A DNA stretch of 64,000 nucleotides from Trichosphaerium sp. ATCC 40318 (taxonomy: Eukaryota > Protista > Tubulinea), in NCBI GenBank assembly GCA_038496445.1, contig JALMLS010000311.1, positions 1 to 64,000 on the forward strand, in the 5' to 3' direction. Shown here piece by piece: positions 10,832 through 62,408 of the stretch. Position 1 is the stretch's first letter, and each line of letters opens with the position of its first letter. The notes beneath the pieces were generated by a model, which was not told where the DNA came from, did not search any database, and saw nothing but the letters and a program-made list of their open reading frames with translations. Made by a program: the position numbers and the translations under genes.

Positions 10832-11204
10832 AATTATAACCCAGACCGTATTAAGTAGTGGTAGCGGCAGCTGTGATAGGGAGGATCTTGAAAAAGTTTA
10901 CAACAAATTCTGAGGTTTTTTTTACCAGCACTCTTTTTGTGTTACACAACAGCAACGTGATAAAGGGAATAGTATTGCTACCAAACAAAATGTTGCGCAA
11001 AACTGCCCTTAATAGAAAATGTTGACTGAACACGTGCGCCTGCAGAAAAATTTGACGTAGCTTGCTACTCTGTAGCGAAGTAAAGCACAACAAACGTTTT
11101 GGATGTACAAATAAATCCTTGCAACGGACTTTTTTTATTTTTTTTCTTTTTGAGTTTGTCTTCTTGTTATTTACATTTTTTTTTTTTGGTGTGTTTTTCT
11201 TTCT

Positions 11205-18559: not shown

Positions 18560-20072
18560 TTATACACGGGCTTGCTCTTTCATTTTAAACATTATTTGTA
18601 ATGCTTGAATGATGAACCTATAAAAGTAGCAAACTTGATTAGAATGGGACAAGGAACACAGGTACTATAAATATACTAAAGCGTTACCTTGGCTTTGAAG
18701 CTGAACCTTTCCATGTAAATTTTTCCCATTCCCAATTGTAGTTTGGTTCGAGCTCTACCAACATTTGTGGCCAGAATCTTGAAAGCCTCCAGCATTGTAC
18801 AGTGTTTGAAAAAGCAGTCAATTGTCTGAATGAAACATGATACCTTAAAGAAAAAAAGTAAGTTCAACAAAAGCAAAAAAATTATTTGGTGATGGTAAAA
18901 AAAAGTTCATACCACATTTCTGGGCTTGTGAAACCAGCCTTCTTCCTTACAGCTCTAAGAAAAGTACGGAATAGTGTCCATTGGTCGAATTCAGCACGAG
19001 TGGATGTAAGTCCTTGCCAATGAAATCTTGTATTATCCCAAACATGGTTTTTGTAAACTGACTGTAATGCACGTTGTAGTGATCCTCCATACCTAAAAAC
19101 AAACCTTAAGAACCAACATACAATATCAATCCTTTGGAGCCTTTTTGTTTTTGTGGTTGAGCAAGTATTAGTACATTTCTATTATATAATCGCCACCAAC
19201 TTCCTTAAAGAAACTTTGTCTAATCCCATACCAATCATCCATTACTTTAACCCCAAGCTGTTCAGCACATGTATTGAATAATTGCCGTTGACGTGGTAAT
19301 GTCCAATAATTCTTTGGTGCATGTCTTTTGTACAAACACGTGTTAATCACGTGACTATTTTTTTTTTGTTTAAATAACAACGCACTGGAAGTTTGTTGGT
19401 GTCCATTTGAAGTCAGGGAATAAAGCCTCCAATGTCTTAGATAAAGAGTTTTTGTGACAACGCCTGATATGGTTGTAATTATGAGAATTATTGGGTGTCT
19501 TTTACAAAAGACTGAAGTGACGCACAATATACAACGACCTCCATAGGCAGTAATATCATTAACGCCAAAGTCGTACCAATCATCTAAGCTCTTGACACGA
19601 AGTTCTTTGGCTATTGTGTTCATTTTTATATGTTGAACATTTGGGTCTTCCCAGTGATGTACTGGTGCGTTTTTGCGCCTAGAAAAGGTATGGTTAATAC
19701 TTGCAATAAGGTACATAACATGAACTGTGCAGGCGCACATAAACTTCCATGACTCCCAGGAGTATTGAGGGTAAACATCAGCTAAACATTTGTAAAGTGA
19801 ACCGTCATAGAATTGTCTGCTCAAAACGCCTCATTTAGCGTTTATTTTGTTGTTATCATGTTTACTTGCCGTATAATGTACGATGTGTCACTTCCAAATG
19901 ATGTTGGATCAACTGTGTACCATTCTTCTAGATTTTTGAAGCCATTTGTCTTCTCAACAGCGTAGATGAGGTTTTTACGGTTACTTGGTATCGTCCAGTG
20001 GCTCCATGGGTTTCTTGTAGAAGTTTGGTGAAGTTTTTGTCCGTTATTACTCAAATACTTCAGTGTACTCAT
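18560..20072 (-). CDS. Trp-rich approximately 70-aa repeat protein (about 4 repeats, no catalytic domain seen); paralogue 1
   Basis: Repeats such as APKNYWTLPRQRQLFNTCAEQLGVKVMDDWYGIRQSFFKEVGGDYIIEMYGGSLQRALQSVYKNHVWDNTRF; multi-exon. Confidence 0.8.
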
Positions 20073-20352
20073 TTATAAGCGCTAATATAGCCATTACACG
20101 TTATGAATACATTTAACAGAGTAATAAATAGAGAAACGCACGTATTAACCATAAAGAAGCGTCTACGTTTCGTATAGAATGTGATCAAGTTATTCCACAG
20201 CCGGTTTAGAACGAAACAGACTTAAGCGCAAGAGAAGTTAAGTTTTTTGCCGTAAACCGCGTATTGGGCGTGTGAAACTACTTTAGTTATAATACGTGGA
20301 TTTATTAGTTGTGTTACAGCAGTTTTAACGTTTTTTTCATGTTCTGTTAAGG

Positions 20353-23300
20353 TCACGTGTGTGAATGAGATGATAGGGAGTTTCCTTTAGCTCTAAATAT
20401 TGTAGTCTTACTTTTACTATCTCCACTGCTCATACGCCCTCGTTTTTTGACTGCACGTCTTTGACTAGGTGGTCCTATTGCCTTTGCAAGGGTTTCAAGC
20501 TTATCACCAGCGTCAGAGTCGATAGTCTTTAGCTTAGGTAGCTTGTCATTTATAAAGCTGTGAAGGTATGCCAATGAAGATAAAATAATATCTTGTGGCA
20601 CTGTTAACCTCACTGTGATTCCAGGTGGTGCTGTGCCAGGAGGATTCTATTGTATTTAAAAGGATCAGTAAGGAGGTAAAAAAGCAAATAATGAATAAAA
20701 CGTACAGCAAGTTTATCTATAAAGTCTCTAAAGTCTGATTGGTTATCAAGAATAAAATCATTAATTTTCTCCATATATTCTTCTTTTATACCAGGTAAAG
20801 TCTCATTAGCGAGATTCTGTAGTGCCTTTGAAAGAAGTACGAAATACCGTTGAGACGTTTGACAAGGAAGTACTAGTAATCATGTCAAACAAGTAGAGGA
20901 CGCCAACTTTTGTTCGAATAAAAAAAAAAGTACAAGTACCTGGAAGCAATCCATATACTTGTGGTGTAGAAATCGCAGGACAAATGAACCTCAAGAATAT
21001 GAAGCCACCTACAGCTTTATAGTTTGTACGCTTCTCTGGGAACTTCTCACCGACTACTTCCATTACGTGGTGAGCCAAATGACGCATTTCACTAAACGAG
21101 GTTAGACCAGTAAAAAAACCTTATTGACTATTTTAAAGTCGTACAGGCGCATGTTTGGTAGTGACTCTTTGATACCCTTGAAGAGCTTCTGTGCTGTGAC
21201 AAGGAGGGTATAATTATTGATTGTAATATCTGCATCATCAACAAAGTCATGTTCAATGCGTTCTGGATCAATCTCAAGATCAAACTAACCAATCTTGATA
21301 AGAAAAAACCCGGAAGAAAGTTAGTGTATTGCTTTCGTACCCTAATAAGCTCTGTTCTATCGTTCTCTGCAACACCTTCCTCACCAATAGCAGTTGCATG
21401 AAGATCATAGATATATTCTGCAAACGTATGCCAGAGGTAAGGTATACCAATAATCTTTGCCCATACAGTAAACATCTTTGATGCAATACTCTCTGATCTA
21501 AATAATATAGAAGGATCACCTCTTGCTCTTTTAACTTCTTCATCAATAAACGTGAACAAAAGTTCTAGTACGCGACCCTATATAATGTTATTATCCAAGC
21601 ATAGAATGAAGCAACTTAAGTTGTGATGTACCTTGCTGTAGTACAAATAAACTAAAGCCTTTGCGAGTGTATCAGCATCATTAGATGAGTGTACTTGCTC
21701 TAGTAGTATAGGCAAGCTATAGCCTGGTTGATCCAACATAGCGTCTAGTGTTTGCAAGTAATTGGCTTGCTCTGCTGTCACATCATGCATTAGTCTTTGT
21801 GTTCCACCGAAAGCGAGAAGAGAATAATCAGGTTCTCTGAAAGCACGCCTTCTCTTTCTTCGTATAATGATGGCAATAATAATTGCCGCAATAAGTAGGA
21901 GTACAAGTACTGCGATTATAATGTAAGCCCAGAACGGGATAACAGTACGGTTATCGTCTGGTTGTTGTACTGCAAATGTTACACCACCTGCAGAAGATGC
22001 AAATAGTTTATCGTTCCACCACAAGGACAAAGCAACGCTAAAGTAAGTGGTTAGATAGTTAAGAGTAGAGGTATGGATGAGTGAATAACTTCTTAAGACA
22101 AACTCGTGCCTAGAGCTTGACGATACAGGTGGTACTATACACGTAAGTGCAGTGTCATTTACTATTACTGCAGGTACTCTACCAGAGCCAAAATCACATT
22201 CCATAACAGGTGCGGCTTGTCTTTTCCCACTTGCAATAAATGGCACGAATGTTGAAATAATATTCACCACAGTGCCTGGTCCACCAGATAGTGGCGCGAC
22301 GCCAATAACAGCTTTAATAAAAGTGTCAGTAAAATTAGCAAGCAATCAAGAGTGTTACCTGGGCATTCATCGACTTCTATTGTTGTTTCTGTGATGGGTG
22401 CTATAGGGCATCCTGATTGTGGTACACAAGTACTACTATACAAGCACCATTCACACGCCTTTCCTTTTGTGTTTTGTGCTAGGCACTCTCCACAACTGCT
22501 TGTACCTTCTGTACAATCTACAAAAGCGTGAGTTTCGGTTTGCAAACGTTTATAACGTACTATAGAAATTAAAGGGAAGTGCAACACCAATGTTGTTTAT
22601 CTCTTCGACATCTGGAAGCGTCAAACGTATGTTAACAGATACTTCAGTCTCAGAACTGCTAAGAGGTACATTACATGCCATAGATGTAGCTGTGACCGCA
22701 AAAGCCTACAAACAGGAATCAGGATGTCTTCATTTCGAAGAAAACTCTTAACAATTCTCACCTCTTCGCTTCTCACTGCTCCGTTCTGAAAAGTGTAATC
22801 ACACGTGTACACTTCGTTGCCGAAAGCCCGAAAGATGCCGTTTATGTTTGTTACACTCTGAGAGCTATTCGAAAATTCGGCCACGGTGGTGTGTGGTGGA
22901 ATGAGTGCTGATACAATTGGACAAGCTAACAGAATATTAATTTCTTCTTACAAAAATTTTGCGCACCTGTAAAGTCTGTTACTCTAAAAGTATCTGAACA
23001 CAAAGAGCTAGTGGCACATCCCCACAATTCAGAGTCAAGACAAAAATTACATACTCCTTCGCTACCACCAATACAAGCGCCACAGGAGGTTCCGTACGAA
23101 GAGCAGTCTGCAAGGAAGAAATTAATAATTAACTCAATCTTAAAACTCATACCAATTAATGTGAGTGCATCTACTTTACGATCGATTACGTTTTGTCCTT
23201 GTAACAGTGATATATCAACAGTCCGTTTATCTCTAATCTGAACTATATCTACTGTTGCGCCACTTGCCTGACAAGTCACTTGACGACTTGAACTTGTAGC

Positions 23301-26300
23301 CAGCTGTGCTGGTACAACAACTTCATCTATTTTGGAACGTCAGGAAAATTATTTCATAGGTTTTAACATTTACCTGTACTGAAGTGATAGATACATTCTA
23401 AGTTACCACTAGCATCAGATATCAACTCGTTTAGCTCTAACTCTAATACAGGTAAAAGAGCTTTATCTGATTGAAAGAATTCCACTGCCAACTTATTAGG
23501 CTGTACACTCTCAATTTCTAATCACATTGTTAAATAAAAGTATAGTTACGAGAAACAATACGTACCTGGGCAAGAAGAGTCAAAGCTGATAAACTCATCG
23601 CAAGTGTCGGTACTGTTTATACATCTTGGTGTATCAGAGAGGCATAGAGTACAACCTCCTACGGCAACACAAGAAGAACATGATGGTTCAGTAGGACATG
23701 CTTCATAAGATACACGGAATTCTAGAATAAAAAAAAAAGGATGAGTGTCTGTCAAACAGTGCAAAAAAAGAATTCTTGGACACTTACTGCTTGACAAGTC
23801 ACCAGATGTGGAGTTCAGAGTCAAAAATCCTGAAACTGTTTCAGTAACATTAACAAATCTTGGTGTTTCACAGATAGCTTGGACTGCATTTCCTGTAGTA
23901 GCTGTCACTTCATAGATCTCACTACCAGCTTCGAATACACAACTCTCCAAACCCTCAAAGTTGTGTGTGACTACTAGTGAATAACCTCCTTGTGGTGATA
24001 ATCTTGTCCGAGATAAAGATCTTATACCTGCAACAAGTAAGACACAAACACATCCAACAATATACGGACCGCAATTAGTCAATACAGTACTAAGACAAGT
24101 CCCAGTGTCACCATCTTCTCTTGCGAAACATAGAGAAGAATCAGAGCAATATCTACATTCTGTATACTCAAAGTCTGTGTCTTCTAAGCAGCTAGAACAT
24201 GCAGTAGATTGAGCGTTACATGTGTAGAATCGCAATTGCGAGTCATAGATACTCACTATGCCACCATTAGCCTTGACAGCAACATCAACATCTCGGAATC
24301 GAGTAATGGCAGCATCATTCTTTGCAAGACATTGTATTGTGTTGTTTCCAATGAATGTAGCATTAACAGGTTGTCCATCGATTACGCACTGTGAAGTAGA
24401 GTTAACGGAGTGCAAATGTTAGTGTTTTCTTACTTGGTAGTCTGTCCAGCTTTCGCTCACTTTATCCATCTGTATAGATATTGTAGCTCCCAAAAGGAAG
24501 GTGTAAACAGCAGGAGGAGTGATTGACAGTATACCTACATTGTTTTTAACTTAATTCTATTTGTTTTCAGCTCGTACTTGGACATGTTACATCAGTGAGT
24601 TCTGGCTTATCTGATTTATAGTGACACTTAGCATTGGCTTCATCGAACACTAGCACGTGGAAGTTAACTCATTGATAAAATGTAGGCATATCATTTAATA
24701 ACTTACCACAGATTGAATACGAACTACAACTTGAACACGATGTCAAAGAATCACAATCTGTAAAAAAAACCAAAGTAAGCTTCTTTAGTTAACACTATTA
24801 AGTCATTGATTACCGTATAGAGTAAAGTCTATGCCATTTGATACAAAGGGTGTGCCACCATAATTCACACTTAGGTTTATTTTTTCTGTAAGTATAATGT
24901 AAGTCATAAAACAAACTCGTTTGCTATATTTTTTTTTACAAATCAAATAAAACAAAAGCCTTTCAGTACCTTCTCCAGTTGGTAGTGATATATTTTCTCT
25001 GGTTACATTCCCCGCACACAATACTGTATTACCTTGCTGTGTACCTGGTAGTGATAATTTACTACCAAACTCACAGGTCAAAGGACCTCTACTTGGATCA
25101 AGTAAAGACAAGAAAACTAGATTATCGCCCAGCAACAAAACTGATAGTTGAGTGGATTCACTGATAGCTGCAGAAGAAGGAGATGCACTTTCTAAAGCAC
25201 CACAAGCAAATGAGTCCTAATATCAAATAAACAAAAAGAAGCAGTAGTAACCAAAAACTACTAGTACCTCTAAAAACGCTCCTTGTAGACTCTCACAAGT
25301 TCGTTTAGTTGAATCACTGTTTGTGATACAACTTAATGTTCTCGTACAGTACGCACAATCTGGTGCGTCTATTAAGCAGCTTGAGCAACTACCGTTTCCT
25401 CTGGTTGAACAATCATAGTAGTCAATGGTGATAGGATCAAAGAGTGGCGTTAAGCCGTATGATATTGTCAAAGTTCCAGGACCTGCCTCGGCTCGAAGTA
25501 GTGTCTCGCAAGTGACTACACGAGGATTCGAAAAATCAATGACAGCTGCGCTCAACTGGGAAGAACCTTCAAAACTACAAAGAAGTGATGCTTTTGTTGG
25601 ATCATTCCACAGAGGTGCTAGTTATTGTAAATAAATAGTAAACAGGGTATTAATACCTTTGGTGGTAATTATTATGGAAGTACCGCCGCCTATACTCGCA
25701 CTGATAGGTAAAGAAGCAGGTGTGACTAAGTAATGTGAGACAAGATTGGTACAACACAAAAACGCACAAGATACAGATTTAGACCAAAACATGTTGTCAC
25801 CACAATCAATTGCTGCTGTGCAACTTCCTGCTAGTTGTGAAGATCCACTCTGATTAATACACCAACCACTACGAAAATAGTGAGTATAAGGCGTGAATAA
25901 AAGGCGTACCAATATGCCTTGTCCTTAGACACACATTCTTCAGGTGTAGCAAATAGCCCACAATCTAAAAGGTTTCAGTTTTGCTTACAATTATTTCAAA
26001 AAAACCCAATAACTACCTGATAGCGATATGGACACTATGTTATCAGTTATTACATGAACAACATGTTTCGCCTTATTGAACAGAATACCATAACTACCTA
26101 TTGGTACATCAAGTCTCCAGACAGGCTCTCTTTTTGAAAAACAAAACATTAGAATTGATTTTTTGGCTTTATAATTCCTTACTTATCAAAGTCAAATCCA
26201 TCATATCTAAATACGGCGTTGACACTCTCATCACGAACAAACAACTGATCTGTTTCTTTATCATAAATAAACGGCGGGCCTCGATTCTCCAAGAGCGCTC

Positions 26301-27688
26301 TGTCAGAGAGAGATTCTACAGAAGATCGCTTGAAGTGGATACTTAGAATAAAAAATCACTCATGTAGAATAAGTTTGCACGTACACCTTCAAAACTGAGC
26401 GAGTCACTCACATTTCTACGTATTAAACCTCTTATAATAGGTGCATCAATTCTTACACGTTTTATGAATCCACCAACACCAGCAATAATATATTCATTGT
26501 TTGTTGATACCATGGCACCGGTTGGTACAAATGATGCTAGTTCAGACTCCAAGGTTACAATAGCTGTTGCATTATCATTTGTAGGATCATCAATTGTAGT
26601 ATCATAAATTGTGTAGACCTCATCAATTTGATCACAGTATGTAACAACTAAACAATAAAAAGTAAGCACGCCAAGACTTTTGCTAAGAAATGATTGGCAT
26701 GCGTACAAAAGTCTTCCATAAATGCTGTAGCGAAGGAACCCAGAAGCCTGCAACCACACCCAGCAGTGATTCTGTTATAAAGATCCTCAACCACCCAATC
26801 ATCCTCGCCCTACAAAATAACGTTATTTGTTTTTTAATTTTCATTTCATTTTTGTACCCATTTTATACGATACATATGCGAGCGATCACCAAATGTCAAG
26901 AAACGAACGTATAAGTAATCACCAAATTCCTTTGCATCGTCAATATTAAGTTAAATTTTCTTTCGATAAAAAAAAAAAAAAAAAAGCCTTTTGACAAATC
27001 TCTCGTTGTCATAACTAACCTGAGAGCCAATTATTTCAAAATTGGTGGGAATGCAAGTGGAGCTGTTTGTTGTATCGAAATCTTGACTGAATACTAATTC
27101 TGGCGTTATTGTACCTGTTGATCATCAAAACGTATTAGGTAAAGAAATGGCCAATTAATAAAAACGTTTACTTATTTCCTTCACGCGTGATATAGGTGTT
27201 GCTCTTATGTTTACTGTAATTGTTGGTGTTTCAATATTCTCAATCTCGTACTCGAACAAAAACTCGGTGTTTTCTACCATGCAACGTTAATTGCGCGTAC
27301 AATATTGCTTTGCGTACCTCCTTTAAAGGGTATTGACCCAATATGAAGTCCAAAGTACTTTGTTACGTTCGGTTGAGCTATGTAGAGTTAGATGAGGCGC
27401 TTGGCACAACTTGCTTGCTACACCTGTAAAAAAAAACGTACTAGTTCTAATTTCTTGCGCAACAAGCTCAGAAGATCTACAATCTGTGCACGCTCCCATA
27501 GTTATACGTCCATCCACCTTCATTTTAAATAGTTCACCAGTCGTAGCAATAGCGTATTCATCTATACCGTTGATACTTTTGAAAGCGAGGGTAGTAGAAG
27601 TTATGCTTGGCATAGGGGTGGTGTAAATTGCAATAATACCAACGACATACAGCGCGCCAATAACACACGCACGCCAGAAGACGCTCAT
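20353..27688 (-). CDS. Type I membrane receptor: signal peptide, beta-rich N-domain, about 7 alternating PSI-like and IPT/TIG-like modules, TM helix, cytoplasmic RasGAP (plexin-like)
   Basis: Signal MSVFWRACVIGALYVVGIIA; Cys modules such as CSSYGTSCGACIGGSEGVCNFC and CTEGTSSCGECLAQNTKGKACEWC; IPT-like PLSGGPGTVVNI...CDFG...LTCIVPP; TM WAYIIIAVLVLLLIAAIIIAIII-RRKRRR; RasGAP motifs LFRSESIASK and GGFIFLRFICPAISTP. Confidence 0.85.
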
Positions 27689-27803
27689 GGTCGCAATATA
27701 AGTGTAACTGCCAAATAGAGTTGTTTGTTGGTATTTTAAGTTCAGGTACGCGCCAAAGTCGTATCCTCTAAGGCAGCTTTTTTTTTGGAGTCAACCGCTC
27801 GAG

Positions 27804-30791
27804 ATGGCGGGCAATAAAGTGTATGACATAGGAGAGACATTAGAGAAACACAGAATTATACTCAAATTGGCGAACAAGGTCTTTGGGACTTACAAAAGTT
27901 GGAATTTGTTTGCACTGCACGAGAAATACTTCTTTTGCATCAGCGACAACGAAATTCACGTCTTACGCAAAGATTTGCTGGTAAAGGGTGACACTACAAC
28001 CTCACAGGTTAGAAATGCCCTAGTACGCGAATAACACGTTGTAGAAAATCATACCACAGACCCCGCTCGATTTTTCAATTACTGGCATCAAAATTAACTG
28101 CGATGGCCGAGTAATCGCCATACATGGTAACCCATGCGTTGGTACAACGAAATGCTGACATGATTTAGGTAACCAAGAATGCCACATAATAAAACTTGGC
28201 AGTCCCGCCAAAGTTGCTTTGGACAACGGAGATCCAATAGTGATAATAAGCAACCACCAAATGCGGTTTGTAACAGGTAAATAACAAAAATTTTTTGAAT
28301 ATATTTTTTTAAACCGTCTACCACGCTTTGCGCTTGTTACTCATATTTAACATTACATAGCGCCATTTTTCCGTCAAGTATCTTGGCATCCTACTTCATT
28401 TAAACACCTACAGTTCCTCACAAAGAATAATACGTTCCTTACATACGATATAACGCAGAACATAAACGGACACGAGCAAATGTACTTTCTAGATCGTATG
28501 GGTTTTAATCAAGATGCTGTACGATTTCAGGTTGGTGCTTCTCGAGAGCCAAGGTACCCTCATTTTCAAATGTAACAATTGTGGCTGATGAAAACAAAGT
28601 TGGGACCATTTTACTGTATATTTTATGACAAGTTATGGTGATGTGTATGCTCTCAGCCCTGTTTTTCCTTTCAACTGGTACGGCTTTCTTTGTTGTTGCT
28701 TACCTTTAGTTTAAACATTTGCTCATGATCATGTCCTTTAGTGTTGTTGAGAGGGAGTTCTTAACATTCCTCCAAGAAGACGAGGAGGCACGGCTCAAAG
28801 GTTTGTTCGAATCTCCATCTGTAGTACCACAAAAGAGGTTTGCCGAAAATGGTACACAGCCAATGCACAGTTGTGCTTTACCAGTTGTTGTTAAAAATAT
28901 AATTATAGAGGAGACAATTAGATGGTTATCTCAAATGCAAGGCATATACGAAGACACATTGCCAGAGAACATAATCCGTACGGCACCTGGTTTTTTTCAT
29001 GTTATTTTCGTAAAAAAAATCCACGTGACTGGTTTTTAGGCACCGAATTTATTACCTCTGGCGTCATTAAAAGTCCTGGAAAACCAGTTATGCAAGGACC
29101 ATTAACAGTTGGCTTTAAATCTTTAAACGGCAAAAGAAAGAATCGAGATATTAAATATGCCTTGAGTAGTTTGAGTACAACACCAGGCGTTGTTATTAGA
29201 TGCAGTTCTGATGGTATCGTTGAAATTTTACTTCGAGTAAAGGAGTTGTCACCAAGATGGGCAAGCTCTATACCTGGAGAAGATGACTACGATGAAGGTA
29301 GCGAGAGACAACTCGTTTACTTTGAGCGTATTGAACTTAAAACAATGGTATGCAACTTAGCCATTATTTTGGAGTGCCTTTTTTTGAATAATGCTGAGAC
29401 ACTTTTGTAGAGTGACTCATATAAAATGGCACCTGTTATAATACCAGATCTTGTGATGGATCAAGTTGGTACGGTTTCAGATCACGTTCAACTTCAATTG
29501 GCTTATATGTTTACTAGTGTTTATTGTTACTGGTGTTGGTGTACATAAGCTCACGTTCCCATGGCTGTTTCCATTAGCGAAAGCAATTAAAAACGACGTG
29601 AGCCTTTTTTTGTCATTTTCTTTTGCGTCTGTTTTTGTTCTGACGCTCGAGCACAGGGGCTAATATCTAATCTTCCAAAAACAATTGTTACTTATCTTGT
29701 TGATATAATGCCACATGCTGGTTATGACTGTTCTTCTGTTCTTGGTAGTGTAGCATGGAATTGGCCTGGATATGAACCTGGTAAATATTCGATTATTTAC
29801 ATTTGCAATTGTTACTTAACAAAATTGTTTTAGGTGTTGCTATACGTCTTGATGGATGTCTTATAGCTATAAAAACACGTGATGATGCTGCAGACAATTT
29901 TGAAAAGGTGTTAGCGGACGATAAGCTAGTTTTAAACGTCGAAAAGACTCCTCTTGCCAAACCAACATTTGACATGCCACGTATTGTCATTAAAAAGGAA
30001 AGAACTATTACGGAAGGTCTCTCTGATAGGAAAGCAGTAAAGGCTATGATGGATGTAATACAAAAAATGGGTGACGGGATCAATAACCTTGAAACAAACA
30101 GGAATATAGCGGAAAATAGGCTGCAGCTTTTGGGACAAAGGTTGCATCATGATAAAACAAGAGCTAAAGATGTAAATGAAAGTTATAACAAACTAGAACA
30201 GAGACAAAGGGAAATATCTTCTAAGATAGTATCGGTTCAGAATAATCAAGAAACTTTGAATTCCAAGCTGAGAGTACGCTTTATTTTTTTGTCGATTTTG
30301 GTTTTTTTTGGTTTTTATTTAGAGTGAGGTTTGACCTTTTAATAGACTTTACACAAAAAAGCGCATATGCTAAGCTCTGAGATTACTCCTGCAGAAAAGA
30401 ATTACTTTACTACATTAGCTTTGCTGAAGCGTAGGGTGGATGAAGAATTTTCGGAAGCTATAAGACTTGTATGTTTCATCCTTTTAGTTTTTTTTTTGCT
30501 TTGCTTACCGTGTTTATAGTCAGAGCGAAGTATAGCAGAAGCAAAAGGTGCACCTCAGGTAGGTATACCTGGTTTGGTAGGAATCAATCAAGAATCTCTT
30601 GCTAAGATCAATCCTTTGATCCTAGAGCAGTATCCTAAAAGAGAACTTCTAAATGTTTTTTTTTTTTTTGTTTTTCTGGAAATGTACCTCCACGCTTTTT
30701 TTTCCTTAACGATTAAAGAACACGCATGCTACAAGACCTGGTTGATAATGTAAATGATCTAAAGGGAAAAATAGCTCAACTCACTATCTAG
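27804..30791 (+). CDS. Nup88/Nup82-like nucleoporin (beta-propeller plus C-terminal coiled coil); multi-exon
   Basis: SWHPTS...TVPHKE/LT region, WDHFTVYFMTSYGDVYALSPVFPF (Nup88-type block), and a coiled-coil region in ORF 29803-30327; ends TAG 30791. Confidence 0.65.
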
Positions 30792-31283
30792 GCTGATTTT
30801 TTTTGAGTCAAGAGCAACAACCACCAAAAAGCACCGGAAAAATAAGCAAGTTGTAAATAAAACGTTTGTCGTTCCAAAAAATAAGCGTGTTATTTTTATT
30901 TATGTCCATGGTATGTACCTTTTAGTACGCGCACTCACTGTCCTATTAGGCCTTTCTAGCATTTGTTTAGACACGTTTGTGTTTTTAGGAAGAATCACAC
31001 TCCCACTAATTTGGCTTTTCTTTGGGCCTTGTCCCTTACACGTAGCAGCGCTGTAATGAATCATGGTAGGAATACCCTTCTTTTATCACGTGCGCAATAC
31101 CCGAATATTCCCTGAGATACGTTAAAACTATTCAGGAGGAGCACTCCGGGTCTGTTTTTTTGTATCACAGCCGTTTTCACTATTTTTGAAGCCTTTCCTA
31201 AACGCAACTTTTTGTTTGAAACCAAAACCAAATAGTAGCTTGTTAAGACTTAACTCTACGTTTGGATTATTGGAGTGCATGTT

Positions 31284-34200: not shown

Positions 34201-36677
34201 ATTAAAAATATACTACCTTGTAGAGATAGTGGGCGCTCGTACATAGTATTAATTCCAAATAGAGCAACACACAGTGCTGGTACATCTTCGTCAAAAAGTG
34301 GGGTTGGAAACGGCTACTCTACTGTAAATTTGGGCAATCTGGGTCCAATACCACCAGGTAGTGAATTTGGAACGCTAGCGCGTCTATTATCACATGATAA
34401 AAAAGCGTACGTTGAATTTTATATAAATTGGTAATGAAAAATCACGTGCTTGGATACGATATGGGTTTATCGTTTTGGGTTTTTTTTTCTGTATAATAAT
34501 GTTGAGTTGTGTACACTTTTTGTTTGTTTGTGTGCATACTCTGATATTATTTACCAGGCGTAAACGTGTTCATTCCATGGGCGTTAAAAATCTCAACGCA
34601 GAGGGTCGTCCATCAATGTTTTTTGCGTTAACATCAAAGGAAGAGAGTACGCTTCTTTTTTGGCTTTTTATATGATTATTAACTTATTTGGATGACGTTA
34701 TAATGAACTAATATTTTCTCCGTAATAGAATACTGGGAGGAAAACAATGCTAAGCTTCTAAAGGTTCAAAGTGTAGCTAGACGATTTTTAGCCATAAAAA
34801 TGAAGAAACGCCTTCGTAAGCAGATACAAGAGATTTTAAATCATTTATCGTATTATTAACATATCTCCAGGCGAGAGGAATAAGTGCGCAAAAGAGTTAT
34901 TGACCTCGGAAACAGCGTATATCGCTAATATAGATATAATAATTACAGTAAGTTCTTCAAAAATACCCTTGGAAAAAAAAAACGACTTAAGCTGGCTTGT
35001 GGCTGTGCTTGGTGTTTTCTTTTCCTCTCTCTGTTTGAAATAGACCACTAATATATCTTATTAGCATTACTTGAAGCCTTTGAGAAGTAAGGGAAATAAG
35101 ATGTTAAATGACATGGAGATAAAGGTAATTAACACTATTTATGATTATAGTTCTTCTTTAAATACTAACACTTTGAGCCACGTTCAGGCTATATTTAGTG
35201 AACTTCAAGTTATCAGAGCTTACAACCAAAAGCTTCATATTGAGCTTACTAACAAACTGAAGAATTGGCATTACTCATCTTGCATTGGAGAAGTTTTTTC
35301 GAAGAAGGGATTTGTAAGTACAATTGTTTCGATCTTGTTTTTTTGTCACGTGACTCCATCTGATTTTCTCCTATTTTAGTCTCAATACTTGAAGATTTAT
35401 ACCCAATACGTTAATAATTATGAAAGAGTACGTGGTTAAGCTATACGATGAACACTGTATTGATTTTTCTAACTATTGGTTAGGCTATATCGACGCTTAG
35501 TCAATGTAAGAAAAAAAATACAGATTTTAGAAATTTCCTGGATAAGACTGATGCAAACCCAGCTTGTAAGGGTTTGGGTCTTTCAGTACGTACTCTTCCA
35601 TACCTATATTTCATACTAATACCCTTATTAGCATTATTTAATTGTCCCAGTTCAACGTACAGTGATTTTTTTATCCATAAAAAAAAAGAATATTAAAAAC
35701 AAGAAATGCTAACAATCTGCCATAGGTATACCACGTTATGTCATGTTATTGGGGGTGCGGAGTTAATTAATATAATCTATTTACTTACAGCCTATTTCTA
35801 GAGTATTTTGAAATGTACACCAAAAGACCATCCTGACTATGGTACGTCCTTCTTTTTGTTTCTTTAATCAGTTTCCTTTTGTTTTTGTTTTTTTTTTGTA
35901 CTTTCTATTAACTTGTATGGTTAGCTGGAATAGAGAATTCCTTCAAGGATATGCAATTAACTGCTGAGTATGTAAACAACAAAAAGAGAGAAGCAGAACA
36001 GCTCGCTGAAATCCTTGTCGTCGAAGAAAAAATAACTGGTAAAGCTGTGGTAAGTGCTTGGTTGAGTTTTACGAACTTGGTGTGGCTAACACGTGACTTC
36101 CCTTTAGAAACTTGCTGCACCTCATAGACGGTTTATTCGCGAAGGTGAAATGAATATCATGACTGGCAAGAAGGAGAAGATGCATTACTGGTTCTTGTTT
36201 ACCGACCTAATCGTAGAAACAAAAGAAATCATCAGGTAATAATTTATTTTTGGCGAGTTGGAAGTGATTTTGTCCTAAGTTTCTTTTAAATTAGACGGGC
36301 AAGTATGCGTGGACTATGGAGTAATAGTGGGGCTAGCAACAAAAAGTATAAATTCGTAAATCAAATCAATATATCCCATGAGACTGTATGTGAAGTATTC
36401 CAATCTTTATCAGGCACGTGATAAAAAATATCCAAAAAAAAAAAAAGGCCATGCGCATGTTCTCTCTTGCTTACATTTATGTTTAGTTGTAATTGGATTC
36501 CGTGTAACTAATGGAGATACTGAATACATATTCTGTTGTAAGTCTGACGCACAAAGGTCAGAATGGTTAGAAGCAATACAAGGAACAATTGATACACTAA
36601 AGAAAAACAAATTTGCAAAAGAAAACGCAAATCATACCGAAGGAAATCAACAACCAACTACGCCTGTGGGAGGATAG
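31284..36677 (+). CDS. RhoGEF with tandem calponin-homology (actin-binding) domains, Pro/Arg/Ser-rich linker, IQ-like motif and DH-PH; multi-exon
   Basis: LQKKTFENWIN...DLFVDLQNG (CH1); NFDRSWQDGRLFCALVH (CH2); KVQSVARRFL (IQ-like); ELLTSETAYIANI, LKIYTQYVNNY, LIVPVQRIPRYVMLL (DH); RRFIREG...RSEWLEAIQ (PH). Confidence 0.9.
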
Positions 36678-36959
36678 AAAAAAAACAAACCAAAAGCGCT
36701 CAAAGCGAAAAAAAAAAGGAAAGTGTGTTAATATAATAGGTTAAAAGCTGTAAACAATATAAAAAAAAATCAAGATTAGAAAAAAGTAAGGTGTCAAGTC
36801 ACAATACGTCAGCAATTTCTTCAACAACATGCTACATACATAGTGTTCTCCCCTCTTGAAGATTGTAAGACGTTTTCAGTAACAAGGTGTGACGCTTGGG
36901 TAACTTAACTGAAAAACTCAACTAAGTACAGTCGGTCTTTTTGTACAGTTTTTTTTGGA

Positions 36960-38605
36960 ATGGAGTACCGCGCACGTCATGGTGCTAAGCGCCCTCCTGC
37001 AATGTGCCAATATTTGAAGATATTGATCCTCTTCGGTGTTATTTCGTACTCAATTATATGGTTATTACTACAACCACGTGCGCATGTTAAACCCAGCGCT
37101 GTTGTAGCGCCTTTAATCAAATCTAGGTCAAAAACAAGAAATACAACACGAGGTAGCTAACCATGACTATGCCGTCGAAAGAGAACCCAAAGCGTTAAGA
37201 CGTAAGCTGTGATACATAACCAAGTGATGAACGACTTTTACAAACTTATTAGCGAGAAAGAAACAAGGGTGGATACTTGGCGACGCAAAGTGGCTGGAAT
37301 GTATTAATGATGAGACACTACAAACCAACAGACTCATAAACCGTATTGACGAGAAGCCTACTGTTATTTTACTCTGGGACATATTTGCAAGTGTATGTAC
37401 TATGTGAAAAAGAAGCATGCGTTCATTATTAGTAGAGTGGAAGACGTCAAATCAAGGACTCTTATCCAATAGCCTTTAACGTATATATGCCAAATGTAAG
37501 CTTGCTTCTAAACTTTATGTGTTAGGATCCTGTTCCGGAATGTGATGTGGACTGCGTTGTATTGGCGAATATCACTGCTTCTCCTTCATGTGCTAGTATG
37601 GTTGATGCGATTGTTTTTACTGAAATGCCGAGAACATATTCATTGGAGTATTTCCAAAGCCCATATCGTGTCGCTTATAACTATTACTTGAATCCGACGT
37701 TTTATGAAATACCAATAGATATCCACATGTCAAGGCGCCCTTCAGCTGATGTACCGATGCTCCACATCCCGAAATGCCCTCTTTCAAATATGGTACTAAA
37801 ATACCACGTGATATCTCCCGCTCTTTGTTTTACATACCTCAGGTTGCAAAAGAGTTTGATCGTAATATTATACTACTGTGGATTTCTGATTGTTCCGCTT
37901 TACCAAGTATTGCTCAAGATCTTATTCAGTTATTGCTGAAGGTGCGTGTGATAGGTTTACTTAAGTTGTATTAACAGCAATAAAAAATACAGAACGGCTA
38001 TGAAATACATGGAGAAACATGTGGCATGCAGGTACACAATAACACATTCATCAGGCTATTTGACAAATACTCAGGGAATAGAACAGATCTCGTTTGAAGG
38101 TGCCAGACAGAGTAGTAGTATTAATGTTGCTTATTCACCTTTTTGTACATAGACTTTAGACAAACAATTGGAAAGTATACCTTTGCAATAATCATAGACG
38201 CTATGGCTTCATCTCAACATTTCAGTAAAGAAGTCATGGAATCAGTTTGCTCTAACACCATCACAGGTACTAATATTTCGTATAATACAAACTTACTCTT
38301 ATTTTGTAGTATACTATGGATCACGTGTTTTAGACAAGCTGTTCACGTGGGGTCCAGAAATTATAAGACTTGAGCACCAGTGAGTTATACTTCATGAGTG
38401 GCTTCGCTTACAAAGTCTTACTAGATCTTCACTGCCAGGAATTATGCGCTTGTTAGACGGTATTAGACAAGGAGATGCTATCAATTACTATCAAGATCAA
38501 GAAGCAGAAGGTGAGATATTGGGACATCCTTATGAAGACTACTCAGAAGAAACAGCAGCATGTAGACTATGTAAGGCCTTATCAAATGTAGAGAATAGTG
38601 TATGA
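36960..38605 (+). CDS. Type II membrane glycosyltransferase, GT10 (alpha-1,3-fucosyltransferase)-like, degenerate motif
   Basis: Short N-tail plus TM (ILILFGVISYSIIWLLL); LLWISDC; KYTFAIIIDAMASSQHFSKE resembling YKFYLAFENS..DYVTEK; terminal CRLC; TGA stop. Confidence 0.55.
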
Positions 38606-38732
38606 ACGAATCCAACAATCTTAAATTGGTGTCTTTTTTAACCAACTTATTTGTTTCAGTGATTGACATCTCAAGTTATCAGTTATAAGTTGGGCTAACC
38701 ATCCCATTTCATGTTTTATTGATTGGGTTAGC

Positions 38733-40304
38733 ATGGAAGGACAAGTTTGGATACGAGACGAATATTTAAAGCGAGATCTTTGGCGTAAAAGGTGGTTAAA
38801 GTTGTCAGACGATCAACTGTTGCTATTTAGCGGTAAGAATAGTAAAACTACGTGTGGCTACACTGTTACGTTAACAGATGGTAAGGTCTTTATTTAATTC
38901 GACTCTAAATACCAATAGACGCCGTAATCGAATCTACAAACATCGCAATGAAGAAAAGACACGGATTTGCGGTACATTTTTGTTAAATAAATACAAACTG
39001 ACATCTATAAAAGGTTTCCACCGTTGGAGGTAGTACAGTGCACTTTTGCGCCTCCAAGCAAACAGAGCGTGATTTATGGGTTGAAAAAATAACGGCAGCT
39101 ATTCCTGCGAGGACCCTTGACAGCATTCCTACTGAGCTTTGGATTTACATCATTCAATATTCTAACTTGAGCACAGTTCTATCTCTACGAGTAGTAAGTA
39201 GGACGATGTTTGCTTCTACCGTCTACAGTCTACGTAAGAAGCTATCGCAGGACGACGCGCTCAAAATGGCGCGAAGCATGACTCTCAGCGGCGCGAAGGT
39301 AAGATTGCAGTCTCGAGAGCGGATATTGAATAACGTTGTAGGCTGCTGATGCACTGAGGCGGTCTACTACGCCTTCTTATAACCGCCAAGCACGTTGGTT
39401 TTGGGATGTAACGAACCAAGCTTTGATACTTCTTGAGCACCTTGACAGTAGAATAAAATTGACAACTAGTGGCTTTAACTGTTGTAACGGCATGGCACAC
39501 GTAAACATACTGCGAGGTACGGGCTGTGGTATGATTATGATTTACGATGGCGTTATCTCTCCAACAACGCGATGCATGGCTAGGTACTATGGTGCTATAT
39601 GCGCTAGGAACATTGCAACCTTTTGGGAGATTTTCGGCGAGCAGCTGACTAAGGAAGACAATGAAGGTGAAGAAGAAAGAGTTGTTGGCCAAAGTGACTT
39701 GGACTTTTGTTTGGAGATGAGATTAATCAACTCAACAAAAGCATTCTTCCTTATCATTTGGTCAGCCCTTTTTAGAGGTATACCTGAATTTGAGCGATCG
39801 TGCTTAAGCCAAATGACAGCATCAGGGCTACAGCTGGTGGCGGCAATCTTGGAGTACAAAAAAAATCCAAAAAGTACAATTAATGATGTTAATTTCAATG
39901 AATTGTTCCCTTCTATGACGCTCACTGAGACAATGCCTGAATGGACAAGGACACCTGATAAATTTAGAAAATACTTAAAAAATATAAAATGGGATATTGA
40001 TCACGTGACAATGATTTTAGATGACTTGGAAGCTCACAACAAGCACATGTTAGATTTTTATCAACGTGGTATAATTTATTATAACATGGCATGTATACAA
40101 TGTATGCTGGTTAGGGCGTACAAAGATTCACAAACTAAGAAAGTAGATAGTACTGATGTATGGCTTAAAACAGCAATGGATTACTTAAAGGAAGCGAGTT
40201 CTTATGATGATTGTCCTGGATTATCTTACTTTCTACAAGACGCTGATCTCAGAGAACTTAGAGAATCAGTAGACGCACACGAGTTTGTAAATATCTTTGT
40301 CTAA
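38733..40304 (+). CDS. PH domain + F-box protein with C-terminal TPR-like helical cap
   Basis: MEGQVW...WRKRWLKL...HFCASKQTERDLWVEKI (PH); LDSIPTELWIYIIQYSNLSTVLSLRVVSR (F-box); YYNMAC...DADLRELR. Confidence 0.78.
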
Positions 40305-40445
40305 ACAACCAGCATCTAATTGGTCTACAATTAATAAATAATTTTCTTTTAAAAAGTACTTGAATTGAAACATCTCCCAAAAAAATTTCTGCAGTTTTGT
40401 GCTAACATTTTTTGTGATAATAGTAGTACTTTTTTTATTTAACAA

Positions 40446-41977
40446 CTAGTTTACATTTGCCAATTTCACTTGTTCAGGGTTCATTGTACGTCGATTTGTG
40501 TTTTCAAATGAGCATGTAGCGTTTACATCAGTAAACAGAAGAGCATCATCTAACTGAGTACTCACTTGCACGTGAGGAGCTTGGTTAGATATATATTTGA
40601 TAAGAGACTGTGTAGTACCATCCCACCAGTACGGGATGATAACAAGCGTTATACCTGTAAAAAAAACCTCAGCTTTAAACAAAAGAAAAGTGAAAAAACT
40701 GATCGACAATCTCGACATTTTTCTCACCTGCAACGTGACATTGGACTCTTTTTTCGACATCATAAGCTTCTCTAGTTACACTTGATAAACCCTCTCCAAA
40801 TACCTTATCATCATAATGTTGCTCACCTAAATGTATAAGAAAAGCAATTAAACAAATGCAACTGGTAAGGCATACCTTGATATTCAAAAGCAAGTGTTAA
40901 ATCAGGTACAAATACATCAACGGTCAAACTTCTTCCTGACGCTGCTCGCGTCCCTACAGCATGCTCATCTATGACATGACACTCAGGGAACACTCTAGAA
41001 ATACATGATGACATCCACCTACAAAACAAAGAGGTAGCGTAAGACTACAGGAAGCCCAAGTCTGCTTACCTTTGTCGTGATTTTTTGGACAAGGTAATAA
41101 ACTTATGCCACTCCCAACGGTACTGCGGATCCAACACTGATAAAACTTGAGGATAATATCTTAACAATCCTCCACCACCTATCTGACACACCTGCGCTTT
41201 TGATACTGTATACCTAAATGGAGAATATTAACAACAAGTTCTCGTCAAAATTCAAACCATACCAAGAGCTTAGTGTCTTTATACCGAGTGTGTCCATAGC
41301 TTTGTGAAGGAAATCTTTGACATTCTTTGAGTCCTGCCAGTATCTATAAGGGTTTCTATCACCCTTTTCCTTAAACGACCAAGCATGACATGGGAAATTA
41401 GCGCACAAGGCACTTTGTAAAGATCCGTTGAATCTTTATGTAAAATGAGAAAGCTTTCGCTATTTCCATAACTATGTACCTGCTGATAAGCCCATGGCCA
41501 CGTTGCTTTATGACGCTGGCAACTGAAATGTTATACCATCCATCAAGCTCTTTTACGTTTAGTGTTTCGCTTATCGTGTCGAGAAGCTTTCCTTGGTTAT
41601 GTTTGTACCCCCAGTAGCGTTGGGGCACTTTTCTACATGAAATGTTAGTAACGCACGCCAAATAACACTATTCGTACCTAAATCGCTCTGGTTGCCAGTT
41701 GTGCCACGGATAAATGCACTCAAGAGCTTTATAAACAGAATTGTCGTATCTATCGCGCGTTAACGCTACAAATAACATGAACGCGTATTTTATAGCGTAT
41801 TAAACCAGTTTTGTGGTTAACACACCTCAGCATGACACCTCTACCATTATTTTGGTTTATATCCCTGTGCGTAACACTATACCACCCATTTAAATCTTTA
41901 ACGCCAAGCTTTGCGCCAATAACCTCAAACCTTTGGCGCTGATGGGCAACATTGCACCAATAGCCACGCCAAATCAT
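40446..41977 (-). CDS. Trp-rich repeat protein (3 repeats) with C-terminal RAP/Vsr-like PD-(D/E)XK domain; paralogue 2
   Basis: Repeats such as KVPQRYWGYKHNQGKLLDTISETLNVKELDGWYNISVASVIKQRGHGLISR; C-terminal VDVFVPDLTLAFEYQGEQHY...DVEKRVQC...GITLVIIPYWWD. Start codon uncertain. Confidence 0.82.
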
Positions 41978-42251
41978 TGACAACGTTCACTCCATCGCTA
42001 AATTGAGATTTGTGGTATTTGACTTAATGTTTGGTCGTGACACGTGCACTTGGTCTCGCATAGACATACGACAAGATTTACTGCAGGGATGATAAAACAA
42101 CATACCCATCTATCACAGTTTTTTAGAACGACTTTGGTGGGCAATAAGTATTCGTTGGTTTGTATCCAAAGTTAAACAACACAGCTGTAAATTGTTGACG
42201 TTTTTTGACTACTGTTTTTGGAAGGAACTCGTAAGTTCCTGCAGGAACTAA

Positions 42252-43039
42252 ATGATGGGTGCGTTTTTTGTAATTGCGGTAGTTACAATTGTTTACGCGA
42301 GTTTAGAACCTAGTAATTCTAGTTCTCGCACTTCTACTGCGCCTCACTCCGAAGGCTATCTTAGTAGTAACGATAGCTTCTTTTCGCCAGATTCGGAACC
42401 CGAGCAGTTGATAGACCTTGGAGGACCTTATATTGCCGCTTGGATAAACGACCAATACCCAGCAGAAGAGAATAAATGGTCTACAGCATTTCTGCGTCAT
42501 ATTAGCTTGAACCTTGACGGAGCTTCTCTATACAACATGGTTACGTTGTATTACGCCAATGGACGAGCATACCCAACTTCTTTGGAGAACATTTTGGGAC
42601 CTTTCAAGTTGGAAGGGTTTTTTGCAATGTGTAAAGAGCGTTTTGATAAGGAAGCCCTTCAACGACAAATTAATGCCAAGAGAGCAGAAGCTGCCATTAA
42701 TCAAGCCAGAGACGAAGAAGAAGCTGCGAGAAGGCAAGCAGAAGCCGCCAGAAGACAAGCAGAATATGACAGAGAGATTGAGGAAATGCAAAAAGCACTG
42801 GATGCAATGAACGACAAGAAAAACTCAGATATGGTACAAAAGAGACTATCAAAGCATACACTTAAACACAACCCAAGGAAGAGTAGGGGATCATTAGCAT
42901 ATAATAACAAGGTACGTTAATCTTGATCGTTACAATAAATGTGTCTGACATTTAATAGCTATTCAAAATACCAAAACCATCAGCCACTGGACCTACAGTT
43001 AAAAAAAGACGTAAAAAACACAGGCGAAAACCAAGTTGA
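42252..43039 (+). CDS. Hypothetical protein with N-terminal signal/TM segment, coiled coil and basic tail
   Basis: 222-aa ORF with hydrophobic start and EEEAARRQAEAARRQAE heptads; one GTACG...TAG intron gives a basic C-terminus ending in TGA. Confidence 0.65.
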
Positions 43040-43317
43040 TTTTGTGCAACTTTGTGGATCAATCAAATGTAAATTTAACTGTATTGTATTTTAAAACTGT
43101 AATTATAAAAACTAGTCAGCTGGTAAATATTCTTATTTGGGATGCAATGCGCAGTTTTAATTGCGTGAAAACAAGCTGGGTTTTATCTCTTAATGTTGGT
43201 CTAACACGACATCTTTATCACGTTTTTAGCCGGCAAATAAATGTTGCCGCAACTTTGAATGCAATACTATATTTCTTGGCATCTCACGTGTGGTCCATAA
43301 AAATACAAGTATCTTAT

Positions 43318-45908
43318 TTAGTCCCAACGCCTTGCTTTATTCATGTGATTCATTAAACCAGACAATTGAGATGCACATTCTCCTTCTGATGTAATTGCAG
43401 CATCCAAAGAACGTGTTAAACGAGTGAACGTATCATAAGCCTGGTACAAAGGTATTTTTGCAGTATCTGTTTGTGATAACGCTTCTAACTGCTTTTCAAC
43501 AGCTTTAACCTTTTTAAGGAGTGTATGAGAGCTTGCTCTTGTAACAGCGAATATCGAATAGTTGTAAAGAGAGTACTCAGGGTACGATAGGTTGATTGCT
43601 GCTTGGCACCAAGCTTGAGAGTACATTTGGTATTCTATGCCTTCTTCTGCAAATGACTCACGTAAGTCCCTAAATATAAAAGTTAGATACCTTTTCTTAG
43701 CTATGGTGTAAGGTTGTGCGAGATTGTACCTGTCTGATGTAATGACCATCGTTGCTGAAAGGTTTTCTGGTGATAGTGTATGTACCCAAGCTTTCATTGC
43801 ATCGTCAGCACACTCAAAACCTGAGGCACTCAGCATTTCTATCGTAGTGCCATTCTCAGTACTTTGTTTAAGGAAAATAAGTCAGCATCTTTGGAAATTG
43901 AAGTGAAAGCGTGAAAGTAGTGGCGTACACTTCAGAGGTAGAGTCAAAGAATCTATCTCCGTACACAACAACACGTTTAACTTGTTTAAGATTTTCAAGC
44001 CATTTCTTTGTCAAGTCGATTACGCACTGGCGCATAATTTGTCGTTGAAGTGAATTTCCTTCATCAGCTAATGATTTATGAGTTAGTTTTAGTTGAGCCA
44101 ATATTTTGTGATGACTTACAATCTTTTTTAGATAGCCACTCTGATACGTATGGCAATGTATGAAAAATGTTATCACAATCGATTAATAGCGTGTTAACAC
44201 AATCTGGAATACTATCTACACTAAAAAAGAATAAGTTTTAAATAAAAGATTGTACAATCTTTTTTACACCAATCAACACGTACTGAAATTGGCTCGCTCT
44301 CCATTTTTGCTCCGGATACAATGTGAGCATAGCTTCTGATAATGAACCATAACTATTTGAGGGCGTTAATGTACGAAACTGAAAAGACAAAGCTCTATTT
44401 CTGTGAAACAAATAGACAGAAAAAAATAAGAAATGGTTGCAAAAGAAAAGATGTGTACATGTCTAATAGTGGTGCACCACCTAATCTTCTTATCTCCTCA
44501 GATGTTACACGATACCAAGCTTCAGCAGTGTGTAAATGTAAATGTTTTTTTACACGTGTAAGAAAATATCTTTGGTGTTTTGTCTTTTGCCACCACTCAG
44601 CGGTAGGTGCATCTCTAACAGAAGAACATAAATAACAAGACATCAACAATTTAAATCACGCTTACATAAACTCCCATAGTAGCCAATGATACTCTGGGAA
44701 AGCATTGACAAGTCGTTCATGCATACTTCGTATGTCTTTCTCCTCTTGCTGCCTAAAGAATATTGGTTAACACTTCAGTAGTTGGGTATTTTACACTGCA
44801 CGTCACGTACTCTACAGCCAAATCAAAATGTTTAGTTAGAACTGTATACCAATCACTCATTGCCATTACTTCCAAAACTTCTGCTGTATCTTGAATACGC
44901 TGTAAAACCGAGAGGTGTAAGCGAACAAAGCTCAAATCAAGTTGGGTTTTTGTGTTTTTATAAATAACAAAATGACTTGTTCTTGTCTTTTCATTCTTTT
45001 GTACCGTGTCAGTTTGTGGGCGTTGCTTGTTCTTCTTTTTTATACGCTTTGACACTGTTCCAAAAATTTCTTTACGTCTTTCCTCATTTACATCTCTAGA
45101 TACATTCCTATATAATTGTCGTTCAATGGCAGCGCTTGTTTTCTCACTAATTCTTCTATCAGGACGCTATTTAAAAAATGTTAATCATATATATCCTTAT
45201 TGCAACAGTAACACTTTGTTACCAATGTACCTCTCCTACGTCTATCCTTTCACTTCCAAATCTACTTTCGAAGCTACGCTCTTTATATGGCTCAGTATTT
45301 TCTTCTACTTTCTCCTCTACTATATCACTAGCTACTTCCTCTTTGTGATGATGTGGGTCATAAGATCTGGACCTATTCGGACGGCGATCTTCCCGTCTAC
45401 CTCTCCTATCACCTCTTCTGTCGTCATTCCTCTCATTGTACCCTGCACGTTTGTCTCTACCATCTCTTCGTCTCTCAGAACGTTTCTTGGATGGCCTGCC
45501 ATCATTGTCATACGCTGAGCTACCTCTACGTTTAGGCGCAGGTACATCAGCTTCAAGTTCAGAGAAATTAGCTCGTGGTACACCGCTATGGGCACTTTCA
45601 GCTCTTTCTTTTCGTTCCATATGCTTTTTTTTCTTTTCCATACTGTATAGGGAGTTAATAGGCCAATTGATTTCATGTCAAATGTTTGATTTTCTCGTTT
45701 CTCACCTGGACGAATTCTCAGTGGATACGAGGTCTACTAGGTCCAGAGCATAGCATCGTACGCCTAAAAAAGGAGAACAATTATTAAAAGTACATAATAT
45801 CCATCATTTACGCGTGATATGGCCACCAAGACACGCACCTTTGCGCCTAGACACCTTTCTAGTAGATTGTACACGAGATTGCACAATACAGCGTGCTGAT
45901 TGCCACAT
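43318..45908 (-). CDS. Trp-rich repeat protein with mitochondrial-type presequence and C-terminal YacP/Rae1-type NYN (PIN-fold) nuclease domain; paralogue 3
   Basis: MWQSARCIVQSRVQSTRKVSRRKGVRCY presequence; R/D/G-rich region; two repeats (WYTV..AFPEYHWLLWEF and WWQK..WYRVTSEEIRRLGG..YGSLSEAMLTLYPEQKW); after splicing LLIDCDNI...VVVYGD...ADDAM...VITSDRDL. Confidence 0.78.

Positions 45909-57205: not shown

Positions 57206-62408
<5,203 letters not shown>

Follow-up and report, generated by a model that had tools for sequence, protein, structure and literature searches.

Three genes of Trichosphaerium sp. ATCC 40318 share a candidate DUF4046-type tandem repeat and differ in their predicted nuclease ends

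Plants, animals and apicomplexans rely for organellar gene expression on proteins that join a reader made of helical repeats to a nuclease, of the PPR-NYN and HPR/OPR-RAP kinds. To our knowledge, the organelle-targeted repeat proteins that have expanded into large families (PPR, OPR and HPR) read RNA. The Vsr/RAP nuclease fold does not by itself decide the substrate, since the homing endonuclease I-Bth0305I cuts DNA (PMC3239194) while FASTKD5, with a Vsr fold, cuts RNA in mitochondria (doi 10.1101/2024.07.18.603998); FASTKD4 is catalytically inactive (PMC11879112). RAP has been reported as undetected in Amoebozoa and Excavata (PMC8190603). Here we describe three genes, A, B and C, in a stretch of 64,000 nucleotides (the window) from Trichosphaerium sp. 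ATCC 40318, contig JALMLS010000311.1, which is intron-rich eukaryotic nuclear DNA of 35-50% GC. A sequence-only reading of the window had placed them on the minus strand, where our gene models, built by hand, confirmed all three as open spliced reading frames (Table 1). It had also proposed that they share one repeat and that this repeat is combined with interchangeable ends: no nuclease in A, a PD-(D/E)XK/RAP-like domain in C and a NYN domain in B.

The genes carry nine repeats in total, four in A, three in C and two in B, which is the number expected from that reading, and the pairwise identity between them is 12-33%. The period was measured to be 75-76 residues (mode 75) and not about 70 as first estimated. 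When a hidden Markov model (HMM) was built from two of the genes it found the third with 144 (A), 136 (C) and 60 (B) bits, as compared to 13, 11 and 8 bits for the best of 2000 shuffles. A, B and C all have phase-2 introns at repeat columns ~51 and 75, and A and C share a further one at column 32; such common intron columns are evidence of homology that is independent of the sequence scores. The recurrence of phase-2 introns at the same columns also implies that whole units can be gained or lost in frame. An HMM scan of the window gave no further copies besides the nine. Repeats are slightly closer within one protein (37% identity) than between proteins (30%). The most variable columns, 37, 38, 41, 46, 47, 50, 51 and 57, correspond to the third to fifth helices, which would be the natural site for specificity residues.

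The fold was predicted on a homologue, P0129, rather than on A, B or C, whose repeats match the same HMM. In this model, with a predicted local distance difference test (pLDDT) score of 91 over the full length and 98 for two repeats, five short helices pack around invariant Trp residues, and each unit forms a compact globule. Solved relatives of the repeat were not found in the PDB, where the best matches were weak ones to TetR-type helix-turn-helix (HTH) proteins (Z 4.1, below significance). A Foldseek search with the two-repeat model against the PDB and a viral library gave no matches at E 0.001, and sequence searches of the PDB with the repeat and nuclease profiles gave none either. The same fold is seen in bacterial clusters of DUF4046 (PF13255), uncharacterised repeat proteins of Bacillota, with a template modelling (TM) score of 0.76-0.81 over both repeats. 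Matches to PF13255 are precomputed, with a newer model version, on five homologues, and DUF4046 clusters are the nearest named ones by language-model features. The direct sequence match is, however, marginal (four of 100 two-repeat segments, best E 0.028), the gathering score was not reached with the local Pfam copy, and the eukaryotic branch differs in having leaders and fusions to a nuclease, a ligase or NYN. Pfam and NCBIfam gave no matches on the exon pieces of the window genes. It appears from model and sequence comparison that the repeat is a branch, found in eukaryotes, of a fold already catalogued as DUF4046 though unstudied, and not a wholly new repeat as had been suggested. DUF4046 is not mentioned in the literature that we searched, where no study of the repeat family was found, nor is the family described in the passages found of the Andalucia mitoproteome paper.

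The family is large. With a profile of half a repeat, 4,945 clusters (50% identity) were retrieved. The organisms named for its members are Heterolobosea sp. BB2, Cavostelium apophysatum (with many paralogues), Echinamoeba and Pyxidicula; other members come from eukaryotic metagenome contigs, and one repeat-only member lies in a bacterial contig. This bacterial protein, P0031 (L242:5516-7873), has ten units and is found among two-component signalling genes. Among the family matches examined there are up to 25 repeats per protein, a number reached by an intronless member of 2124 residues, with a nuclease, in a eukaryotic metagenome contig (L001:10001-16375). A word-based homologue search with the intron-containing open reading frames (ORFs) of A and B, which was limited by its length filter, gave no matches.

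A nuclease of the C type, with the Vsr/EDxHD/RAP fold, stands at the C-terminus of 118 of 186 homologues, and many of the remainder are fragments. No NYN partner was seen in the 186, so that B is alone in this among 189 proteins. In six of the 186 (P0038, P0062, P0080, P0090, P0093 and P0166) the nuclease is followed by an ATP-dependent DNA ligase of the LigE/PRK09125 type; most of these tails are without the catalytic lysine, and among those checked only P0038 has the full KxDG motif. In the nuclease tree the ligase label requires at least two changes. By eye, the tails of P0011 and P0090 resemble PARP-type zinc fingers. Every partner domain that could be identified (nuclease, LigE ligase, NYN in B) is a nucleic-acid enzyme. 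The three end states proposed for the window genes are seen in the gene models, but the effectors are not freely interchangeable, since the Vsr-like nuclease is the rule, NYN was seen in B only and A looks like a loss.

For the nuclease of C the PD-(D/E)XK/RAP-like assignment was borne out. The fold, again predicted on P0129, matches Vsr (Z 10.0), a RAP-type chain of the Toxoplasma mitoribosome (9.6), I-Bth0305I (9.4) and FASTKD4 (9.1), which are statistically tied. Residues D265, E276, H282, D301 and K304 of C occupy near-invariant columns of the family, and judged from the order of the motifs some of them probably correspond to D196/H213/D222 of I-Bth0305I. In the first helix 97 of 111 family nucleases have Gln instead of Glu, as does C (Q230). 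In a tree of 112 columns, and hence of limited resolution, C falls within the repeat-fused clade. The nearest annotated sequence relatives are phage homing endonuclease ORFs and DUF723/DUF4379-nuclease proteins. The RAP model of Pfam matched none of 10 family nuclease domains, in which only DUF2726 was found, mostly below cut-off. The fold is shared with RAP, but the link to RNA that the sequence-only reading drew from these folds is not established for the family, given its homing-endonuclease relatives and ligase fusions.

The NYN domain predicted in B is supported too, and by its motifs it is NYN-class and YacP-like. It is colinear with YacP, having D-C-D-N for D-G-Y-N, followed by Y-G-D, A-D-D and T-S-D-R-D. 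YacP profiles were built locally; the family identity of the Firmicute set was checked, and contigs from the pattern search named human gut metagenome were excluded. Against the unbiased Firmicute profile the domain scores 8.3 bits and ranks 4 of 3005. A broader profile, partly selected on two of the motifs, gives 37.9 bits; with the selection motifs masked 23 of 5000 shuffles were as good, and for the N-terminal half alone 64 of 5000. PIN/NYN domains have an Asp after S1, an acid after S2, an acid at the start of H4 and an Asp after S4 (PMC5499597), and in B these places are taken by D417, D474, D502/D503 and D526/D528. Rae1/YacP is an RNase that requires D7 and D81 (PMC10351889), of which B probably retains the equivalents. 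Pfam, run on exon pieces of B, gave no match to NYN_YacP (PF05991). The feature search with the C-terminal pieces yielded nothing of use, and a DUF885 match in it was rejected because of low recognition and few shared features.

In B a phase-2 intron at the standard repeat-end position follows the second repeat, and the NYN exon comes next. There is no ATG between the last repeat and the first NYN motif and the unspliced frame stops, which means that NYN must be spliced to the upstream exons and is not a separate gene. Exon shuffling would be the simplest origin of the fusion. The complete NYN motif needs removal of an in-frame intron of 60 nt (43729-43670). Intron 1 of B is a joint in public transcript contigs, a contig edge fits the last acceptor, and these contigs do not cover B between 43672 and 45735. 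In exon 4 there is possibly an extra in-frame intron of 105 nt (45004-44900, minus strand), just ahead of the first repeat.

Gene A was predicted to consist of repeats only, and its four repeats are accompanied by no nuclease match. Its predicted frame requires a GC-AG intron, intron 1 (19869-19817, minus strand). In type its last repeat agrees with the terminal repeat of C (32% identity, and both have the column-32 intron). The last intron of A, a phase-2 one ten residues past the array, also matches C exactly. The position of this intron and the type of the terminal repeat, and these alone, hint that A lost its nuclease rather than being designed as an empty slot. The tail was also tried as a first nuclease helix and rejected, the score being equalled in 927 of 3000 shuffles.

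Basic, acid-free N-termini resembling presequences were found in 70% of 97 family proteins and in 17% of internal segments, although this control is imperfect, as protein N-termini are generally more basic than interiors. Mitochondrial-type leaders are seen across the family, in keeping with the organellar parallel drawn by the earlier reading, and such N-termini are consistent with mitochondrial presequences. In the window, B has the clear example, ending in R-x-Y-A, which we take to be an MPP-type cleavage motif, and the leader of A is plausible. C starts directly within a repeat, without a leader peptide, and may be 5'-truncated, given this start. All seven of its introns are joints in public transcript contigs (run X1), and the transcript begins at 42041, where a template-switch adaptor is attached. 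Its 5' leader has an upstream ORF of three codons (41986-41994, minus strand) shortly ahead of the ATG at 41977.

The reading that we favour, though to us an evenly balanced proposition, is that after import the arrays would attach to a nucleic-acid site in the mitochondrion and present their terminal enzyme there, with B acting as an RNA endonuclease, C as an active Vsr-fold nuclease and A by binding only. The three would then belong to an extensive protist family whose proteins are encoded in the nucleus, mostly targeted to mitochondria and made of tandem 75-residue, five-helix units of the DUF4046 fold, in which the array would recognise its site by sequence or structure and position the C-terminal enzyme. 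The ancestral and usual enzyme would be the Vsr/EDxHD/RAP-fold endonuclease, as in C, and A a derivative that lost it. B would be specific to its lineage, the product of fusing a YacP/Rae1-like NYN ribonuclease to the array at the phase-2 intron that closes a repeat, and its architecture would be parallel to, but independent of, PPR-NYN (PRORP) and HPR-RAP (FASTKD5). That B carries a predicted RNase argues that the repeat can serve RNA targets. B is the sole form seen with an RNase, and beside C it gives a direct comparison of DNA and RNA. Further claims on the array are weaker. We consider it possible, while leaning against it, that the array evolved independently as an organellar scaffold that reads sequence by a code of its own. 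If a code exists it would make a new engineering scaffold; the programmability proposed by the earlier reading is speculation. In the programmable scaffolds TALE, PPR and PUF each repeat reads one base through residues at defined positions, and what is seen here of that kind is the variable columns.

Several observations weigh against our proposal. The repeats are on average just mildly basic (mean net charge +1.1, with +4 to +5 for each repeat of C and -8 and +4 for the first and second of B), and the first repeat of B is acidic. C has no leader. The NYN assignment has modest independent statistical support and the domain is without the GYN signature of YacP, a signature that is also altered in many YacP-like proteins of bacteria. 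With two repeats B may fall short of what specificity requires, none of the public transcript contigs spans its repeat-NYN junction, and the homologue census and searches found no second repeat-NYN protein in other organisms. For the C-type branch, the fused ligases and the homing-endonuclease relatives speak for DNA.

This last point leads to an explanation which we find doubtful, yet the most serious of the alternatives: the repeat would be a DNA-binding, HTH-like unit that descends from mobile nucleases of bacteria or phages, and the family would act on mitochondrial DNA, in nicking, recombination or nick-and-seal repair. B would be an oddity, with its RNase tethered to DNA or nascent transcripts, and the NUMOD-EDxHD homing endonucleases would be the parallel. 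Besides the phage relatives of the nuclease, the ligase tails with one intact KxDG and the PARP-like zinc-finger tails, I-Bth0305I has the same order, with repeated binding motifs before a Vsr-like domain (PMC3239194). The resemblance to TetR-type HTH (Z up to 4.1) is, however, below significance and the catalytic lysine is missing from most ligase tails, while RAP domains of the same fold act on RNA, NYN is an RNase fold, and the known large organelle-targeted repeat expansions read RNA.

Since BB2 has the repeat family and its recognition of editing sites is unexplained, we also considered that the arrays are the site-specifying factors of a BB2-type insertional editing in mitochondria of the source organism, each marking a position where a base is doubled. 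The best-scoring homologue is from Heterolobosea sp. BB2, where editing proceeds without guide RNAs or site motifs being found (PMC5421314), and the family, large and with presequence-like leaders, is a candidate for how such sites are chosen. But the family has expanded in Cavostelium too and has members in Echinamoeba, Pyxidicula and bacteria, for which the literature search found no such editing; BB2 editing looks co-transcriptional and nuclease-independent when most members keep an intact nuclease; and, with sites numbering from hundreds to thousands, the set of factors required would be very large. We hold this to be improbable, and slightly more so the combined idea that a coded DUF4046-type organellar reader with Vsr, ligase and NYN effectors also supplies the site recognition for base-doubling editing in both the source organism and BB2. 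Least likely of all is that the repeats do not read, being protein-interaction or structural spacers, for instance on the mitoribosome, with specificity in the nuclease and with B as a Rae1-like ribosome-associated RNase that carries two repeats by chance. There is no visible code, the charge is modest, B has one intact repeat only, and RAP proteins in the top Foldseek rows serve as mitoribosomal subunits. The number of repeats, however, varies from 2 to 25 ahead of a constant nuclease, which suits a reader, repeat-only proteins exist in bacteria, and all partners are nucleic-acid enzymes.

Table 1. Features of genes A, B and C, with positions in the window
Feature	Position	Strand	Basis
Gene A: 8 exons, 351 aa; 20-aa acid-free leader, four DUF4046-type repeats, short tail, nuclease-free	18560..20072	-	predicted model; HMM test
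A repeat array, aa 21-323	18717..20012	-	
Gene C: 8 exons, 380 aa; three repeats and predicted Vsr/EDxHD/RAP-fold nuclease	40446..41977	-	model; 7/7 introns in transcript contig
C repeat array, aa 1-221; net charge +4 to +5 per repeat	41099..41977	-	
C nuclease domain; D265, E276, H282, D301, K304 kept; Q230 in first helix	40575..41089	-	fold from homologue P0129; tree
Gene B: 11 exons, 643 aa; leader, R/D-rich region, two repeats, YacP-like NYN, helical tail	43318..45908	-	model, mostly predicted; intron 1 confirmed
B presequence-like leader, aa 1-29; 8 K/R, 0 D/E, ends in R-x-Y-A cleavage-type motif	45746..45908	-	
B Arg/Asp-rich low-complexity region	45231..45641	-	gene model
B two repeats, aa 271-403; first degenerate and acidic, second intact and basic	44284..44896	-	
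B NYN (YacP-like) domain; D417-x-x-N420, D474, D502/D503, D526, D528	43639..44195	-	YacP profile alignments

The neighbours in the window include a kinase, an SDR, an IPT/RasGAP receptor and a formin. A well-expressed spliced gene at 42224-43105 (plus strand), with a predicted N-terminal hydrophobic segment and a charged coiled-coil region and without a Pfam family, lies head-to-head with C (~180 bp between the transcript starts) and tail-to-tail with B. Adjoining A is a plexin-like receptor gene (20353-27688, minus strand) with IPT/TIG repeats and RasGAP, both weak Pfam matches. On the same strand, long Gly/Phe-rich low-complexity ORFs with tandem repeats of 60, 111 and 132 bp, at 11171-13153, resemble an FG-repeat nucleoporin, and a formin gene with GBD and FH2 domains is found at 57748-61869.

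Compared with the systems described so far, the repeat is, as the sequence-only reading had noticed, unrelated to PPR, OPR and HPR in both fold and period: a 75-residue globule of five helices as opposed to a hairpin solenoid of 35-38 residues, and no solenoid was matched in the PDB. With the FASTK/HPR-RAP and OPR-RAP proteins the family has in common a leader, helical repeats and a C-terminal Vsr-fold domain (Z 9.1-9.6), probably in the same mitochondrial setting, while their repeat is a hairpin of 37-38 residues, and the family described here lacks a Pfam RAP match and keeps the full Vsr-type D/E/H/D/K set. EDxHD homing endonucleases (I-Bth0305I) and Vsr are alike in nuclease fold (Z 9.4 and 10.0), phage homing endonuclease ORFs are similar in sequence, and I-Bth0305I has repeated binding modules N-terminal to the nuclease as well. 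The genes described here are, however, nuclear and rich in spliceosomal introns, lie among ordinary nuclear genes and not in a self-splicing intron or intein, and have DUF4046-type repeats instead of NUMOD and Gln for Glu in the first helix. B shares colinear motifs and acidic residues with Rae1/YacP (PF05991), but it has D-C-D-N where the signature of YacP is D-G-Y-N (PMC5499597), and it is fused to repeats and a leader when YacP proteins are mostly single-domain. With PRORP (PPR and an NYN-like metallonuclease, which cleaves tRNA at the 5' side) B has in common an organelle-type leader, helical repeats and a predicted PIN/NYN-fold RNase; it differs in a repeat unlike PPR, with no PPR motifs, in a nuclease that resembles the YacP/DUF188 side of the NYN group rather than the class of PRORP, and in that no Zn-binding central domain is seen. 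What is new in the window is the three end states side by side and the NYN fusion, the latter being the distinctive part. The architecture is like PPR-NYN and HPR-RAP but belongs to neither family, and its repeat is a catalogued DUF that appears unstudied. These thousands of proteins, on an unrelated fold without a solved structure, could be the amoeba and excavate counterpart of the reader-nuclease proteins of plants, animals and apicomplexans.

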